Sequence record: MW749003.1
Reading direction: 5' to 3' (one strand)
DNA: 64,000 nt
Shown piece by piece: positions 1,151 through 5,949 of the stretch; the first letter of the stretch is position 1, and each line of letters opens with the position of its first letter. A program made the translations under genes and the position numbers. Below the pieces are notes generated by a model, which was not told where the DNA came from, did no database searches, and saw only the letters and a program-made list of their open reading frames with translations.

Positions 1151-2296
1151 ATGCCTGAATTTAATTTAATGGAAAATGTAATTGAAGTAATAGAGGTTCC
1201 AAGTGGTAGTAAATCTGGTTTATTCCCAAGAAAGAGAGAATCTGGTTTTGATAAAATATTAAGGCAAGAAATTGTACCAGCTCAAAAGAATCATCTTGAT
1301 ACAATTATAAAACGAATGAAAGCAATAGGCTATGATAAAATTGCTGTACTTAACACAAATATTCAATTTTATTGGGAGATAACTACAGTCGAATATCCTT
1401 TTAATAATGATAATCAGCTACATATAACATTAGTTAATAAAGAAAATACTATTGAATATTTAAGTTTAGTAAATCTTAAATCTGGATTTTTTTCAGATAG
1501 AAAATTTAATAACCTAACAAAGAGACTCCAAGATTCGGGAGAAGATATTGGAAAGATTATGAGAGCATATATAGAATATAATTTACCATATTACTTTTCG
1601 AGAAATTATGAGAAATATGAAAAGGAGAATGAAGAAATGAAAAAAGAAAATAATAAAGTTAACGATAAAATTAATAATAAAGAGGTAAATATTCTACTAG
1701 CCCCATTGGTAAAAGATTTCTTAGGAACAATTGGTAGTATTGCAATATTAAGAAATTTTAGTGAGTATTATGAAGACAAGTATATTGAGGATAAAGATAA
1801 AGTTGATAAATATTTTAATGAATTAATTGATGACGTAAAAATATTATTAAAAACCAAAAATGATATTACATTAATTGATCCTAATCCAAAAAATAATAAG
1901 TATATTAATCTTGTTAAGATTATGAAAGGAAAAGAATCAGTATTTAAGAATATTAAAAGAAGCCTATCAATTAATAAAAATAGTAAACATCCTTTATTAA
2001 GAAGTGAGCTTGAACCACTCCATTCAGAGTATTTTGAAGGAAAATACAGAGAGTATATTTTTAGAACAATGCTTGTGTTAATTGAATTCTTTGAGAATAG
2101 TTTCAAGGAAAATCCAATGGCAACTAAACATTCTGAATTTCTTAACAATATTGAAAAAGCTTTATCTAAAGACGAAATAAAAGAATATGTTGGTTATGAT
2201 TTGTTTAAATCTGATTATGAGAATAATCCTATCTTTGAAGAAAGCTTAAAGCGTGTTAAAGGGCATTCAGCTGTTGATATATTAGAATCCCTATAA
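1151..2296 (+). CDS. Hypothetical protein, paralog of 132-1136
   Basis: 381 aa; SD GGGGA; C-terminus SKHPL...YFEGKYRE...YVGYDLFK..YENNPIFEESLKRVKGHSAVDILESL. Confidence 0.8.
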   Translation: MPEFNLMENVIEVIEVPSGSKSGLFPRKRESGFDKILRQEIVPAQKNHLDTIIKRMKAIGYDKIAVLNTNIQFYWEITTVEYPFNNDNQLHITLVNKENTIEYLSLVNLKSGFFSDRKFNNLTKRLQDSGEDIGKIMRAYIEYNLPYYFSRNYEKYEKENEEMKKENNKVNDKINNKEVNILLAPLVKDFLGTIGSIAILRNFSEYYEDKYIEDKDKVDKYFNELIDDVKILLKTKNDITLIDPNPKNNKYINLVKIMKGKESVFKNIKRSLSINKNSKHPLLRSELEPLHSEYFEGKYREYIFRTMLVLIEFFENSFKENPMATKHSEFLNNIEKALSKDEIKEYVGYDLFKSDYENNPIFEESLKRVKGHSAVDILESL

Positions 2297-2337
2297 TAAA
2301 TTCCTCTAAACCCGACAATACCATAGTTTACTATGCT

Positions 2338-2856
2338 ATGGTATTGTCATTACAAAATCTAAGAATTAACAACATGAAGATGACATCACTTAAGGAGGAA
2401 TTTATCATGAAGAAAAGATGTAATAATATTCATTGTATTGATAATAGTATTACAGAAACTGATTTACAAAAATGTTGGTATTGTAATTCTGATCTAACTA
2501 TGGTTGGTAAACCTATTGATCTAGATATTGGTCAGAAAATTTATGTTAACGAGCAGAATCATTTCTTAGGGATATCAGAAGGCAATTTAATCGAATGTGA
2601 AATTACTAAGATTAATAAATCTGCATTTTATGCTAAAGAAAAAAATAAAGATTATGAATATAGATTTAATCGAAAAACTTTTACAGGAAAAGGTATTCAT
2701 GTAGGAAGTATGTTAACTGCTTATTTAACAGTAGATCAATTTAATAAAGAAATGGATTACCAAAAAGAAAGAGATGAATTATTGGTTAAAATTAAAAAAA
2801 GGTTAGATGAATTAAATTTAGAAACATTAAAGGATGTAAATAATTTTATTAAGTAA
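2338..2856 (+). CDS. Hypothetical protein with N-terminal Zn-ribbon (probable start ATG 2407)
   Basis: AAGGAGG precedes ATG 2407; CNNIHC and CWYC. Confidence 0.7.
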   Translation: MVLSLQNLRINNMKMTSLKEEFIMKKRCNNIHCIDNSITETDLQKCWYCNSDLTMVGKPIDLDIGQKIYVNEQNHFLGISEGNLIECEITKINKSAFYAKEKNKDYEYRFNRKTFTGKGIHVGSMLTAYLTVDQFNKEMDYQKERDELLVKIKKRLDELNLETLKDVNNFIK

Positions 2857-2968
2857 AAAGGAGATATATTTGAAAATATTTAAAATGTCTCCCTTATATA
2901 AGGTTTAAAAAGAAAAATAAATAGATATTATAATAATGAGAAAATAGATATTAAGGGAGAGAGAAACA

Positions 2969-3484
2969 ATGACAATGACAAAACCACTTAAAGAGAAAAC
3001 ACTAAGTAATATGTTAGGAAAGCTTTTCAATGAAGAATTTGAACTTACTAAAGAGCAACATGCATTATATGAAAGACTTAAAGAGATTGAAGCACGTAAA
3101 GAAGAGATTTTAAATGAGAGAGATATCCTTCAAGGATTAGGGGAAAAAGAAGATTTAGACTTTGTTAGTGTGGATACTGAAACTACCACTACAACTAGAG
3201 TTACATTTGATAGAGATGAGAAAATTCAATCAGTTGAGATTAAAGAAGAAAAGAAAGAAAAACGTACTAGAATGTCTCAATCTGAGAAAATGAAAGCTAT
3301 TGATACATTAAAAGAGATTATGGAACAATATGGTCGTCCTATGAAGCTAAGTGATATTATTGAAGAATTAGCTAACCATGGTTATGAATGGAATAAAGTA
3401 CAATCTGCACGTAAGTTCATTACAGATTCAGGTATTTTAGATTCACCTTGTCGTGGTATGTATCAATTAATTAGAAAATTTTAA
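2969..3484 (+). CDS. Coiled-coil plus C-terminal winged-helix DNA-binding protein, Rok/sRok-like
   Basis: N-terminal EQHALYERLKEIE coiled coil; C-terminal TLKEIMEQYGRPMKLSDIIEEL...SPCRGMYQL resembles the Rok winged helix with a P-x-RG-x-Y wing (from memory). Confidence 0.45.
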   Translation: MTMTKPLKEKTLSNMLGKLFNEEFELTKEQHALYERLKEIEARKEEILNERDILQGLGEKEDLDFVSVDTETTTTTRVTFDRDEKIQSVEIKEEKKEKRTRMSQSEKMKAIDTLKEIMEQYGRPMKLSDIIEELANHGYEWNKVQSARKFITDSGILDSPCRGMYQLIRKF

Positions 3485-3705
3485 TAAGAGATTAATTATT
3501 TGGGAATAAAAATCAATCAACCATTATTAGATTCAATAATGGTTGATTAAAATGGATAAAGATTTGTTAAAAACATGTTTAGATAAAATTGAACGTCAAA
3601 AAAGGGAGTTAATAGCTGAAAATGCAATGATGCAAACCATGTAAGTAGTAGAAGATTAGTCTTCTACTACTTATACCAACAATAAAAACTAAAATTTTTT
3701 ATAGG

Positions 3706-4617
3706 GTGATAATTATGCTAATGACAAAATCTTTTAAAAATATACACCTAATTAAATGGGATATCTATACAGTTCTTAAAACACATGATAAAATATTAGA
3801 TATACTATCAAATAGAGTAAATTATCAGAAAGTACACATTGAAACAATTTATACTGAATCCGGAATCCAAGTAGTACAAAAATTAACTAATGATACATAT
3901 AATATATCTAAAAATAGTCTCCCTCTTTTATCTTATGGAGAAGCCAAGTTTAGTAAAGATGCAATGGATATGATAGTAAATAATTTTATGAATAGTAATA
4001 ATTTAAAAACTCAAGATGACTATAATAAATATAAAGAAATGCTTTTAAATAATGAGAATAATGAAGTTACAGTTGTTATAGATGCATCTAATATCGTGTT
4101 ACAGACAAATCATATTTCTGATGAAGAAATAGATCGTGCTAAAAAACATCTAATTTCTAATCATGATTTTTATGAATCTAAAAAATTATGTGATGTGTGT
4201 GGTAAAAGATCTAATAATGTATCTGAAAGAAATGAATTTGGTAGATTTAAGATTCATTATTTCTGTGATGATCATAGAGTTAAGGAATTATATAAGAATA
4301 AAAGTATAATAAATAACCAAATTATATCATATAATGGAAAAAATAAAATTAATCTTGGAGCTAAACCTACATGTGATGTATGTAAAGGAAGTTTATCCAC
4401 CTTTATATACACTGATCAATTTTATTTATTATATGATGATACAAAATTATGCAATAATTGTGTTCATAGCTATATAGGAAGAAATTTATTAAATCAACAT
4501 GGACATAGATGTGAAAACTGTCGTGGACAAGGATATATTAGGGATTACAAACTCTATAAAGTAGTTTGTGCTTATTGTCAAGGAACAGGTTGGATTAAGA
4601 AGGAGAACAGTAAATGA
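3706..4617 (+). CDS. Multi-Zn-finger protein with C-terminal DnaJ-type CxxCxGxG pair (paralog family 1 of 3)
   Basis: HLIKW N-terminal motif; CDVC, CDDH, CDVC, CNNC; CENCRGQG...CAYCQGTGW. Confidence 0.7.
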   Translation: MIIMLMTKSFKNIHLIKWDIYTVLKTHDKILDILSNRVNYQKVHIETIYTESGIQVVQKLTNDTYNISKNSLPLLSYGEAKFSKDAMDMIVNNFMNSNNLKTQDDYNKYKEMLLNNENNEVTVVIDASNIVLQTNHISDEEIDRAKKHLISNHDFYESKKLCDVCGKRSNNVSERNEFGRFKIHYFCDDHRVKELYKNKSIINNQIISYNGKNKINLGAKPTCDVCKGSLSTFIYTDQFYLLYDDTKLCNNCVHSYIGRNLLNQHGHRCENCRGQGYIRDYKLYKVVCAYCQGTGWIKKENSK

Positions 4618-5516
4618 GGGATTTACATTTAATTAAATGGTCATTAGCGGGAATGATTAGATTTGAGGATTTATGTTTTCCTCAATTTGATAAAACTTAT
4701 GAAATTATTTTTACTGATGGTTATGTAGAATTAGTTTTTGAACGAAAAAATAATTTTATTACATTTAAAGTACCTGTTGGAATTAAATATGGGAAGCCTT
4801 ATCTTTCTAATGAATTAAAAAAAGAAATACAAGAAAGAACTATTACTTATTATTATAAATATGTTAATTGTCTAAAAAGAGATGAATATTTAGATTATAG
4901 GAATAAATATCTACAAAATAAAAATAATAAAGTAGCTATTTTAAGAGATTCTAAAAAGTTAAAAGTATATGCTAATTACGAAATATCTGAGAAAGAGTTT
5001 CTAAATATTAGGCGAGAAAGAGTGAAGATTAAGGATTTTCTCAAGGAGAATATATGTGAAGTTTGTGGTTCAAGAAACTTATTAACTAGATTCAATAGAC
5101 ACAATTTATGTAATAAACATTCAATACAAGTTGAATTTAAAGAATATCATAGTTTAGATGATTTAATAAAGGAAAATAATAAATTAAAATGCCATTGCTG
5201 TAATGAAGATATTTTAAAAACTGATCTTTATATGAAACAAGATAAAGAAGCGAAAGAAAATATCGCATCGCCAATATTCACTATATTTCATAATACGGAT
5301 CCACTGGATAAAGATTTATATTATTGTGATCAATGTAAAAGAAAGTTTAATGATAAAATAGTTGAAAATATTGTTAAACGGTCAGAAATATGCAAATGTA
5401 AGGAGTGTAATGGAAAAGGTTACGAAAGAAATTATTATGTAGAAAAAGAATTCTGTGAAAAATGTAATGGTAAAGGATGGGTTAAGAAGAAGGGAGTAAA
5501 TAATGAAGTACAATAA
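4614..5516 (+). CDS. Multi-Zn-finger protein with C-terminal DnaJ-type CxxCxGxG pair (paralog 2 of 3)
   Basis: HLIKW motif; CEVC, CHCC, CDQC; CKECNGKG...CEKCNGKGW; ATGA overlap with upstream gene. Confidence 0.75.
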   Translation: MRDLHLIKWSLAGMIRFEDLCFPQFDKTYEIIFTDGYVELVFERKNNFITFKVPVGIKYGKPYLSNELKKEIQERTITYYYKYVNCLKRDEYLDYRNKYLQNKNNKVAILRDSKKLKVYANYEISEKEFLNIRRERVKIKDFLKENICEVCGSRNLLTRFNRHNLCNKHSIQVEFKEYHSLDDLIKENNKLKCHCCNEDILKTDLYMKQDKEAKENIASPIFTIFHNTDPLDKDLYYCDQCKRKFNDKIVENIVKRSEICKCKECNGKGYERNYYVEKEFCEKCNGKGWVKKKGVNNEVQ

Positions 5517-5949
5517 TACTTTAGATAGATGGAGACATTTAATTATTTGGGATTTTGAAGATGTTATGAAATTTGATTCAAAAATACCAAAGAGTATTAA
5601 ATATAATCATCAAGACACTGACTTAATAATTCTGTATGAAGTAGTTCTAGCGGAAGAGTATATTGAGTTTATCTATAAAACCAATGATAAATTTAGATTA
5701 TCAAAAATTATTCCACCTATTAAGAATAATAAAATAAAATATACAGAGGATTTCTATGATAGAATGTTAGCATGTACTCATCCTTTTTATACTGTTCCTA
5801 ATACTAAAATATTGATCAAAGATGAATATGATAAATATAGATTAGAACTTATGAATAATTTAAAAAATAAAGTTATATTATTATCATATAACTCAGAAAG
5901 GATGAAAGTATATACAAATTATAAACTATCAGGATTGGAGGAGATTTAA
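5503..5949 (+). CDS. Shortened third paralog (N-terminal domain only)
   Basis: HLIIW motif and DEYDKYRLELMNNLKNKVILL shared with the two upstream ORFs; no Zn fingers; frame stays open 40 codons past TAA, to 6072. Confidence 0.6.
   Translation: MKYNNTLDRWRHLIIWDFEDVMKFDSKIPKSIKYNHQDTDLIILYEVVLAEEYIEFIYKTNDKFRLSKIIPPIKNNKIKYTEDFYDRMLACTHPFYTVPNTKILIKDEYDKYRLELMNNLKNKVILLSYNSERMKVYTNYKLSGLEEI

Follow-up and report, generated by a model that had tools for sequence, protein, structure and literature searches.

We analysed a 64,000-nucleotide stretch of sequence record MW749003.1 (the window; positions are counted from its first letter) and focused on one gene for a small protein, which the original prediction, made from the letters alone, had called a phage-encoded homologue of the Bacillus xenogeneic silencer Rok. 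A 3-kb query from the window (2000-5000) was 100% identical to Bacillus phage vB_BspM_Internexus and about 97% identical to PBS1, AR9 and Goe21 (Takahashivirus), and the window is DNA of a PBS1/AR9-type phage. PBS1, AR9 and Goe21 are classical uracil-DNA jumbo transducing phages of B. subtilis. The phage genome, which is uracil DNA, has a GC content of 28%, and the GC content of the window varies between 22 and 34% along its length.

The open reading frame (ORF) lies where it had been predicted, and the strings quoted from its product are present in the translation (EQHALYERLKEIE at residues 29-41 and SPCRGMYQL at residues 159-167). Its orthologues in AR9 (g039) and PBS1 (gp226) are annotated everywhere as "hypothetical protein", and a literature search for gp039, g039 or their accessions found no functional study; we use g039 for the gene and gp039 for the protein (Table 1). 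The protein matches phrog_34763, a group of unknown function, with an E-value of 6.5e-118. There is one copy of g039 in AR9, and the protein is 100% identical in all seven of the seven sequenced PBS1-like genomes. Five nucleotide sites of g039 are polymorphic among the window, AR9 and PBS1, and all five changes are synonymous; g039 is therefore under purifying selection.

Table 1. Features at and around g039 in the window. RNAP, RNA polymerase; AF2, AlphaFold2; pLDDT, predicted local distance difference test score; aa, amino acids.
Feature	Position	Strand	Remarks
Early (virion-RNAP) promoter element AAATAGATATTAT	2919..2931	+	AR9 'early promoter' annotation at identical sequence
Shine-Dalgarno AAGGGAG	2953..2959	+	9 nt before ATG of the g039 ORF; read from the sequence
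Coding sequence, Rok-like protein, AR9 g039 / PBS1 gp226 orthologue	2969..3484	+	171 aa; coordinates include the stop codon
N-terminal long helix, residues 5-61, predicted acidic heptad coiled coil	2981..3151	+	AF2 pLDDT 91-98
Linker, residues 62-103, low-confidence/disordered, mixed K/E stretch	3152..3277	+	AF2 pLDDT 49-58
Predicted C-terminal winged helix, residues 104-167, basic	3278..3469	+	AF2 pLDDT 94-98
14-bp hairpin	3515..3548	+	directly 3' of g039, before the g040-like ORF
g040-like ORF	3552-3644	+	30 aa in the window and in PBS1

An AF2 model of gp039, built on an alignment of 38 family sequences, had a mean pLDDT of 85.9 and divided the protein into a long N-terminal helix, a linker and a C-terminal winged helix. 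The hydrophobic positions of residues 12-57 recur in the family alignment with a clear period of 3.5/7 residues, the pattern of a coiled coil; this part of the protein has an isoelectric point (pI) of about 5 and is presumed to be an oligomerisation domain. The C-terminal domain was modelled with the canonical winged-helix fold, that is, three helices (residues 104-121, 127-136 and 144-153) and a beta-hairpin wing W1 (strands 157-161 and 164-167), a fold that is not specific to Rok. Conserved in this domain are G122-R123-P124, W141, A147 and the wing residues R162-G163-x-Y165. The predicted layout of coiled coil, linker and winged helix is thus borne out by the model and the heptad periodicity, and it is colinear with Rok. 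The linker contains a threonine run, TETTTTT (window 3173-3190, residues 69-74). As a separate observation, this run (TTTTT-V/I) recurs in many relatives amid an otherwise variable linker and is absent from Rok; AF2 hinted, at low confidence, at short strands there, and the run might serve as a site of modification or form a strand between subunits.

Rok (YkuW) of B. subtilis is a xenogeneic silencer and nucleoid-associated protein whose DNA-binding domain defines the Pfam family WH_Rok (PF23159; PDB 5ZUZ and 5ZUX). Like Rok, gp039 has an N-terminal helical region, a flexible linker and a C-terminal three-helix winged helix in the same order, and common to both are the wing motif P-x-R-G-x-Y and a basic winged-helix domain. 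The Rok strings that the original prediction had cited for comparison are real, since ...IYAKLRELD... and ...KKPYRGQY... occur in rok genes that we fetched from Bacillus genomes.

Relatives of gp039 were collected by an exhaustive phmmer search of 1.8 billion representative proteins, which returned 40 sequences at E <= 1e-3, mostly metagenomic. They are 86-564 residues long, most of them 130-185 residues with the same layout; most align in the C-terminal 70 residues and several over their full length. Seventeen family members match phrog_4665 and 14 match phrog_12313, both of unknown function. A word-indexed protein search with gp039 returned its own cluster and no wider relatives, and the profile of the whole-family alignment yielded nothing among PDB sequences beyond coiled-coil noise and a dynein stretch matched by chance. 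Close relatives in 50,697 GenBank phage genomes were confined to the PBS1 group, and tblastn with the family members P0005 and P0012 against the GenBank phages likewise found only the seven PBS1-like genomes. We inspected the genomic context of relatives on four contigs, chosen as those of the best-ranked relatives and the longest. All four looked phage-like; the contexts were small-ORF arrays, a contig with a faint integrase match, and two replication modules, one with Pol III alpha, clamp loader, ThyX and SASP and the other with a RepB-type primase, an SNF2 helicase and a dUTPase. The GC content of the phage contigs with relatives is 33-42%. Thymidylate synthase is encoded in some of the phages, which shows that the family is not restricted to those with uracil DNA.

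The relationship to Rok was assessed by comparing profiles of the two families. Rok-family genes were gathered by running the WH_Rok model over pLS20, the plasmid that carries sRok, and 91 Bacillus-family genomes (61 of the 91 had matches), giving a reference alignment of 16 non-redundant sequences; an sRok-based scan of genome contigs had returned two close sRok copies only. When the whole proteins were compared with hhalign, the gp039 family matched the Rok alignment with a probability of 94.4% (P 9.4e-8) over 151 colinear columns, and the C-terminal domains alone matched with 91.4% (P 9.1e-7) over 64 columns. In the control comparison with the HARE-HTH domain of RpoE the match was 27.8% over 31 columns and covered helices 1-2 only; HARE-HTH is the example that the original prediction gave of an unrelated winged helix whose match would speak against it, and its match was weaker than that to Rok. 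The LexA winged helix gave 0.8%, 40 column-shuffled Rok profiles scored at most 15.1 (at most 1.9%) against 36.2 for the real profile, and the reversed Rok profile scored 11.9.

Chromosomal proteins that lie between the two families were then sought with a hidden Markov model (HMM) of the gp039 family in 401 sampled Bacilli genomes, and four were retrieved. On Pfam WH_Rok they scored 30.3, 41.7, 24.6 and 55.4 bits, three of the four being above the gathering cut-off of 27.6 bits, and the same four scored 24-40 bits on the HMM of the gp039-family C-terminal domain. One of them retains the N-V-T-T and K-K-x-G-R-G motifs of Rok, and the neighbours of the three that were checked are housekeeping genes. 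When the four were added to the family HMM, it reached Rok-family proteins over their full length with up to 26.6 bits, and the hhalign match between the gp039 family and Rok rose to 95.3%. The profile matches with their controls, and above all the intermediates that pass the WH_Rok cut-off, argue that the C-terminal domain of gp039 is a genuine remote homologue of WH_Rok. By sequence comparison, the family of gp039 forms a diverged branch within a larger Rok-type superfamily, outside PF23159 as Pfam defines it.

Two further observations were made on chromosomal Rok-type proteins. Outside the canonical Rok group, such proteins lie beside ordinary metabolic genes in the four Bacilli genomes of the intermediates, with GC contents of 42-51%, and many genomes of the B. 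subtilis group carry a second coil-plus-WH_Rok paralogue of 125-132 residues (62-64 bits), about 5.5 kb from rok and on the opposite strand. The Rok superfamily seems to be wider than the reviews state (PMC11841835, PMC7074111).

Direct tests on gp039 itself gave results that weigh against its being a Rok homologue. Pfam WH_Rok did not match gp039 (E <= 10), nor did the model find anything at E <= 0.001 in six-frame translations of AR9, although the positive controls Rok and sRok scored 86 and 78.5 bits. Some other family members, in favour of the homology, do come close to WH_Rok: the best match was that of P0037 (23.6 bits, E 5.5e-5), below the Pfam cut-off, and P0005 and P0003 matched more weakly (E 0.019 and 0.029). 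The N-terminal domains of gp039 and Rok (in Rok about the first 45 residues, Pfam PF26513 Rok_N) were not significantly similar in the profile comparison (P 0.0066, 13 columns), and direct HMM searches between the N-terminal domains of the gp039 family and Rok stayed at noise level. Two of the chromosomal intermediates, L090p and L091p, gave weak scores on the N-terminal HMMs of both families (18.2 and 11.5 bits for Rok, 8.8 and 16.1 bits for the gp039 family). Canonical Rok itself had no tblastn match in the 50,697 phage genomes. Thus the predicted Rok homology holds for the winged helix, gp039 falls outside Pfam WH_Rok, and a relationship between the N-terminal coils would be tentative.

Structural comparison does not decide between Rok and other winged helices. 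In the Foldseek search that the original prediction had proposed as a check, the Rok DNA-binding domain (5ZUZ) ranked second for gp039, with an E-value of 9e-3 and 18% identity, and VIA-align superposed the two over 67 residues (Z 8.2, root-mean-square deviation 2.4, 18% identity). Rok tied, however, with the winged helices of MCM, Rpa2, cullin WHB, ZBP1 and RpoE (Z 7.6-8.9); the structure search alone has no power to separate them, and we count it neither for nor against membership of the Rok family. The ESM Atlas placed a Rok-family cluster first by structure, and its first Pfam-named cluster by features was Rok-like, which we take as a lead only. The top Foldseek hit was the C-terminal winged helix of archaeal MCM (PDB 2MA3), which was also the best direct sequence match in the PDB (E 0.0084); MCM and gp039 have the wing ...P-x-R-G-Y... 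in common, but the MCM domain is a helicase C-terminal appendage with no coiled-coil partner, the E-values are marginal, and the match gained no backing at the profile level.

The other known domain with a link to gp039 is HARE-HTH (PF05066), found for example in the RNAP delta subunit RpoE, which matches weakly the first two helices of the gp039 winged helix. On Pfam HARE-HTH gp039 scored 15.4 bits (E 0.024, profile positions 5-32 of 71), below the cut-off of 25.9 bits, and on NCBIfam TIGR04567 (RNAP-delta) it reached a sub-threshold E-value of 0.01. The winged helix of Rok shows the same weak link to HARE-HTH (48.7%). The RpoE domain is acidic and protein-binding and lacks the wing motif of gp039. 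We rejected the possibility that gp039 is a simple HARE-HTH/RNAP-delta-like protein; the match is partial and weaker than that to Rok, and the link is present in Rok too.

We compared the residues of gp039 with those by which Rok contacts DNA. Rok makes its minor-groove contacts through N154 and T156, where helix 3 begins, and through R174 in the wing, with K171 and other lysines assisting; N154, T156, R174 and K171 are reported to be invariant or highly conserved in Rok homologues, and Rok prefers the all-AT pentamer ATATA and favours TpA steps (PMC6212790). The wing R162-G163 of gp039 aligns with Rok R174-G175, and this Arg-Gly is the best conserved motif of the gp039 family (the Gly is invariant and the Arg is present in 26 of 38 members); K126 of gp039 aligns with Rok K136. 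At the other positions the comparison tells against a Rok-like contact. T156 is replaced by V144 (Tyr in 28/38 family members) and K171 by S159 (Lys or Arg in 14/38), D153 and D158 put acidic residues where the family or Rok has basic ones, and in gapped alignments (MAFFT and hhalign) N154 falls on K143. In an ungapped register, N142 (S23/N12 in 35 of 38 members) stands at the 20-residue spacing that Rok N154 has to the wing Arg, and from the alignments the counterpart of N154 is ambiguous between N142 and K143. The full contact set N154, T156, R174 and K171 is therefore not retained, only R174-G175 being clearly kept, much as the original prediction had described an Asn-Thr-Arg motif in part preserved: the wing Arg is there, the Thr is lost and the Asn is ambiguous.

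There are other differences from Rok. gp039 lacks the basic RRRRGTARPG-type tail, rich in Arg, that precedes the winged helix in Rok, and its linker is rich in Thr where that of Rok is rich in Gln, Pro and Ser. Its N-terminal helix exceeds that of Rok by about 10 residues, is more acidic and shows no detectable similarity to it. With a pI of 5.5, lower than that of any other family member, gp039 as a whole is acidic, whereas Rok has a pI of about 9.4. A further difference is that the gene for gp039 belongs to a lytic jumbo phage and is immediate-early in its expression.

The expression of g039 is known from the published transcriptome of AR9. The virion RNAP recognises early promoters of the consensus AAATATATATTAT-(6N)-G, and the primary transcription start site of g039 lies at AR9 31858, with a leader of 31 nt (Table S2, PMC5312081). 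In the window, AAATAGATATTAT and the G at 2938, the start site 6 nt 3' of the element, fit this consensus; the AR9 'early promoter' annotation is placed 38 nt before g039 on the same sequence. The AR9 leader corresponds to window 2938-2968, and the 85 nt upstream of g039 are identical in the window, AR9 and PBS1. The abundance of g039 in AR9, in fragments per kilobase per million (FPKM), was 2444, 3683 and 2615 at 5, 20 and 40 min (Table S4, PMC5312081). Its flanking genes, g036-g038 and g041-g042, were at FPKM 25-250, and only about five of the genes g001-g141 exceeded g039 at 5 min (PMC5312081). Thus the early promoter and start site together with the FPKM values demonstrate that g039 is an immediate-early gene with very high and continuous expression.

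A second, near-identical early promoter element, AAATAGATATTAA (last base A, not T), was noticed in window 2942-2961. This second copy, 23 nt further downstream, overlaps the Shine-Dalgarno sequence and is followed six bases on by a G (2961); in the differential RNA-sequencing table of AR9 only the upstream start site is given for g039, and none at the second element.

The gene appears to be co-transcribed with the small gene g040 that follows it. The 14-bp hairpin between the two folds as RNA with -16.5 kcal/mol (z -3.6) and has no U-run on the plus strand, being terminator-like in the scan only on the minus strand; it is possibly an RNA-stabilising or processing element.

Starting from the gene, its promoter, expression level, architecture and remote Rok homology, which are documented here or in the published data, we lean, with somewhat more confidence than doubt, toward gp039 being an abundant early oligomeric DNA-binding factor of the nucleoid-associated type, a divergent phage-borne member of the Rok superfamily. 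The injected virion RNAP transcribes g039 from its own early promoter, and the gene reaches a high level of expression within 5 min. In the scheme that we propose, the acidic N-terminal heptad helix would assemble homo-oligomers and thereby provide multivalency, while the flexible Thr-rich linker would tether the basic winged helix and give it reach. The winged helix would then bind DNA, probably AT-rich, in a partly Rok-like way through the wing Arg-Gly. Its target may be the uracil-containing phage genome with its 28% GC, the AT-rich DNA of the host, or both. Thymine and uracil in DNA differ only by a methyl group in the major groove, and on this ground a Rok-type minor-groove reader, whether of the host or of the phage, should still see PBS1 DNA and not be blind to it.

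One alternative is that the winged helix of gp039 binds protein, docking onto RNAP, DnaA or the replisome, and that gp039 is an adaptor for host takeover or replication and not a DNA binder. The sub-threshold HARE-HTH and RNAP-delta matches of gp039 would fit this, as would matches to HARE-HTH in five of the 38 family members (best 3.2e-4), the nearest structural neighbours, which are mostly protein-binding winged helices, the overall acidity of gp039 with its loss of several Rok DNA-contact residues, and the report that Rok itself recruits DnaA (PMC11841835). The winged helix is nevertheless basic across the family (median pI 9.4; 9.8 for the Rok domain) whereas that of RpoE HARE-HTH has a pI of 4.8, the WH_Rok profile match is much stronger and spans the full domain where HARE-HTH covers helices 1-2 only, and the best conserved family motif is the wing Arg-Gly, the element with which Rok enters the minor groove. 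We therefore consider a protein-binding adaptor unlikely. It is more doubtful still that gp039 is a sequence-specific regulator that acts on the TpA-rich early promoters (AAATATATATTAT) and times the switch from the virion to the non-virion RNAP, in place of a general coating of DNA. The core of the AR9 early promoter consists of TpA steps, as favoured by Rok (PMC6212790), and g039 is early and sustained while most early transcripts fall after 20 min (PMC5312081); but this is pure inference, the Asn and Thr contacts, on which the specificity of Rok depends, are not retained, and the family phages have no AR9-type RNA polymerases in the stretches seen.

A further alternative would make gp039 an anti-silencer, its coil joining that of host Rok in mixed oligomers, in the way that H-NS is joined by truncated proteins of its type, so that Rok is removed from the AT-rich phage genome or Rok targets are de-repressed. 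The layout of gp039 is colinear with that of Rok, the N-termini of L090p and L091p are weakly matched by the Rok and gp039-family N-domain HMMs alike, the expression is immediate-early and high, and silencer homologues on mobile elements commonly interact with the core silencer of the host (review PMC7074111). The direct comparison of the gp039 and Rok N-domains was, however, not significant, the gp039 helix differs from that of Rok in length and acidity, and members of the family are also found in phages with 33-42% GC, canonical Rok being mostly restricted to Bacillus. Taken together, we regard such mixed oligomers as quite improbable. The roles put forward in the original prediction, which were oligomerisation with the Rok of the host, counter-silencing, repression of host genes and organisation of the phage chromosome, are all speculative. 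A broader proposal is that PBS1-type phages flood the cell with their own diverged Rok-type protein and so control the occupancy of AT-rich DNA, by displacing or poisoning Rok or by timing the early promoters, and this we offer as speculation that is probably wrong. As an observation on timing, the HU homologue of AR9, g103, is the top late transcript (FPKM 52,105 at 40 min and 27 at 5 min; PMC5312081). If gp039 is the nucleoid-associated-type factor that we favour, the phage would have two nucleoid-type proteins of opposite timing, a Rok-like one early and HU late.

The closest precedents for gp039 are silencers on other mobile elements. sRok (RokLS20) of the conjugative plasmid pLS20 is likewise a small Rok-type protein (132 residues) with a coil and a winged helix; unlike gp039, it is a clear WH_Rok member by its score of 78.5 bits and retains N-M-T and K-K-P-R-R-G, and gp039 is far more divergent than sRok and is borne by a phage, not a plasmid. 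Mobile-element copies of other silencers are H-NS of phage EPV1, Lsr2 of mycobacteriophages and Sfh of R27 (PMC7074111). As with these three, a mobile element would carry its own silencer type for AT-rich DNA, but the proteins of EPV1, the mycobacteriophages and R27 are members of the H-NS and Lsr2 families.

Of the four bacterial classes of xenogeneic silencers, Rok is the one least well understood, and according to reviews of 2020 and 2024 it is essentially limited to the chromosomes of Bacillus and a single plasmid (PMC7074111, PMC11841835). No phage-encoded Rok-type protein is mentioned in these two reviews, though phage homologues of H-NS and Lsr2 are described. Our results show that phages have a divergent family of Rok type, that chromosomal intermediates link it to Rok and thereby widen the Rok superfamily, and that a candidate function can be named for a gene that ranks among the most strongly expressed immediate-early ones of the classical transducing phages PBS1 and AR9. 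If the broader proposal made above is true, gp039 would be the first protein of the fourth (Rok) silencer class to be encoded by a phage, and a founding member of a wider phage family. The question that it raises is how an AT-rich uracil genome fares against a host silencer that reads the minor groove, for which B. subtilis 168 with AR9 or PBS1 is a tractable system.

The region 2338-2930, just upstream of the g039 promoter, is not the same in the window as in AR9 and PBS1; it was compared with 3063-3950 of the AR9 piece. AR9 has g037 (149 residues) and g038 (DUF1642, 136 residues) there; the window has a single 172-residue ORF (2338-2856) with a zinc-ribbon-like motif, C-x-x-x-x-C ... C-x-x-C. 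Identity with AR9 and PBS1 resumes about 85 nt before the g039 ATG, and the region has the appearance of a strain-specific replacement of genes with its boundary at the early promoter.

Downstream, AR9 g040 (88 residues), the next gene after g039, has the highest FPKM of the region (4546, 13402 and 4926; PMC5312081). It resembles the 30-residue ORF of the window in its first 20 or so codons and then diverges, and a 16-bp hairpin 3' of this ORF (3640-3675) is very stable (-20.3 kcal/mol, z -6.9). Three consecutive overlapping genes follow at 3706-5949, all of them weakly expressed in AR9. AR9 g041 and g042 encode paralogues of about 300 residues with C-terminal CxxC-rich zinc fingers of the DnaJ type, and the third gene encodes a 148-residue protein that resembles the N-terminal halves of their products.

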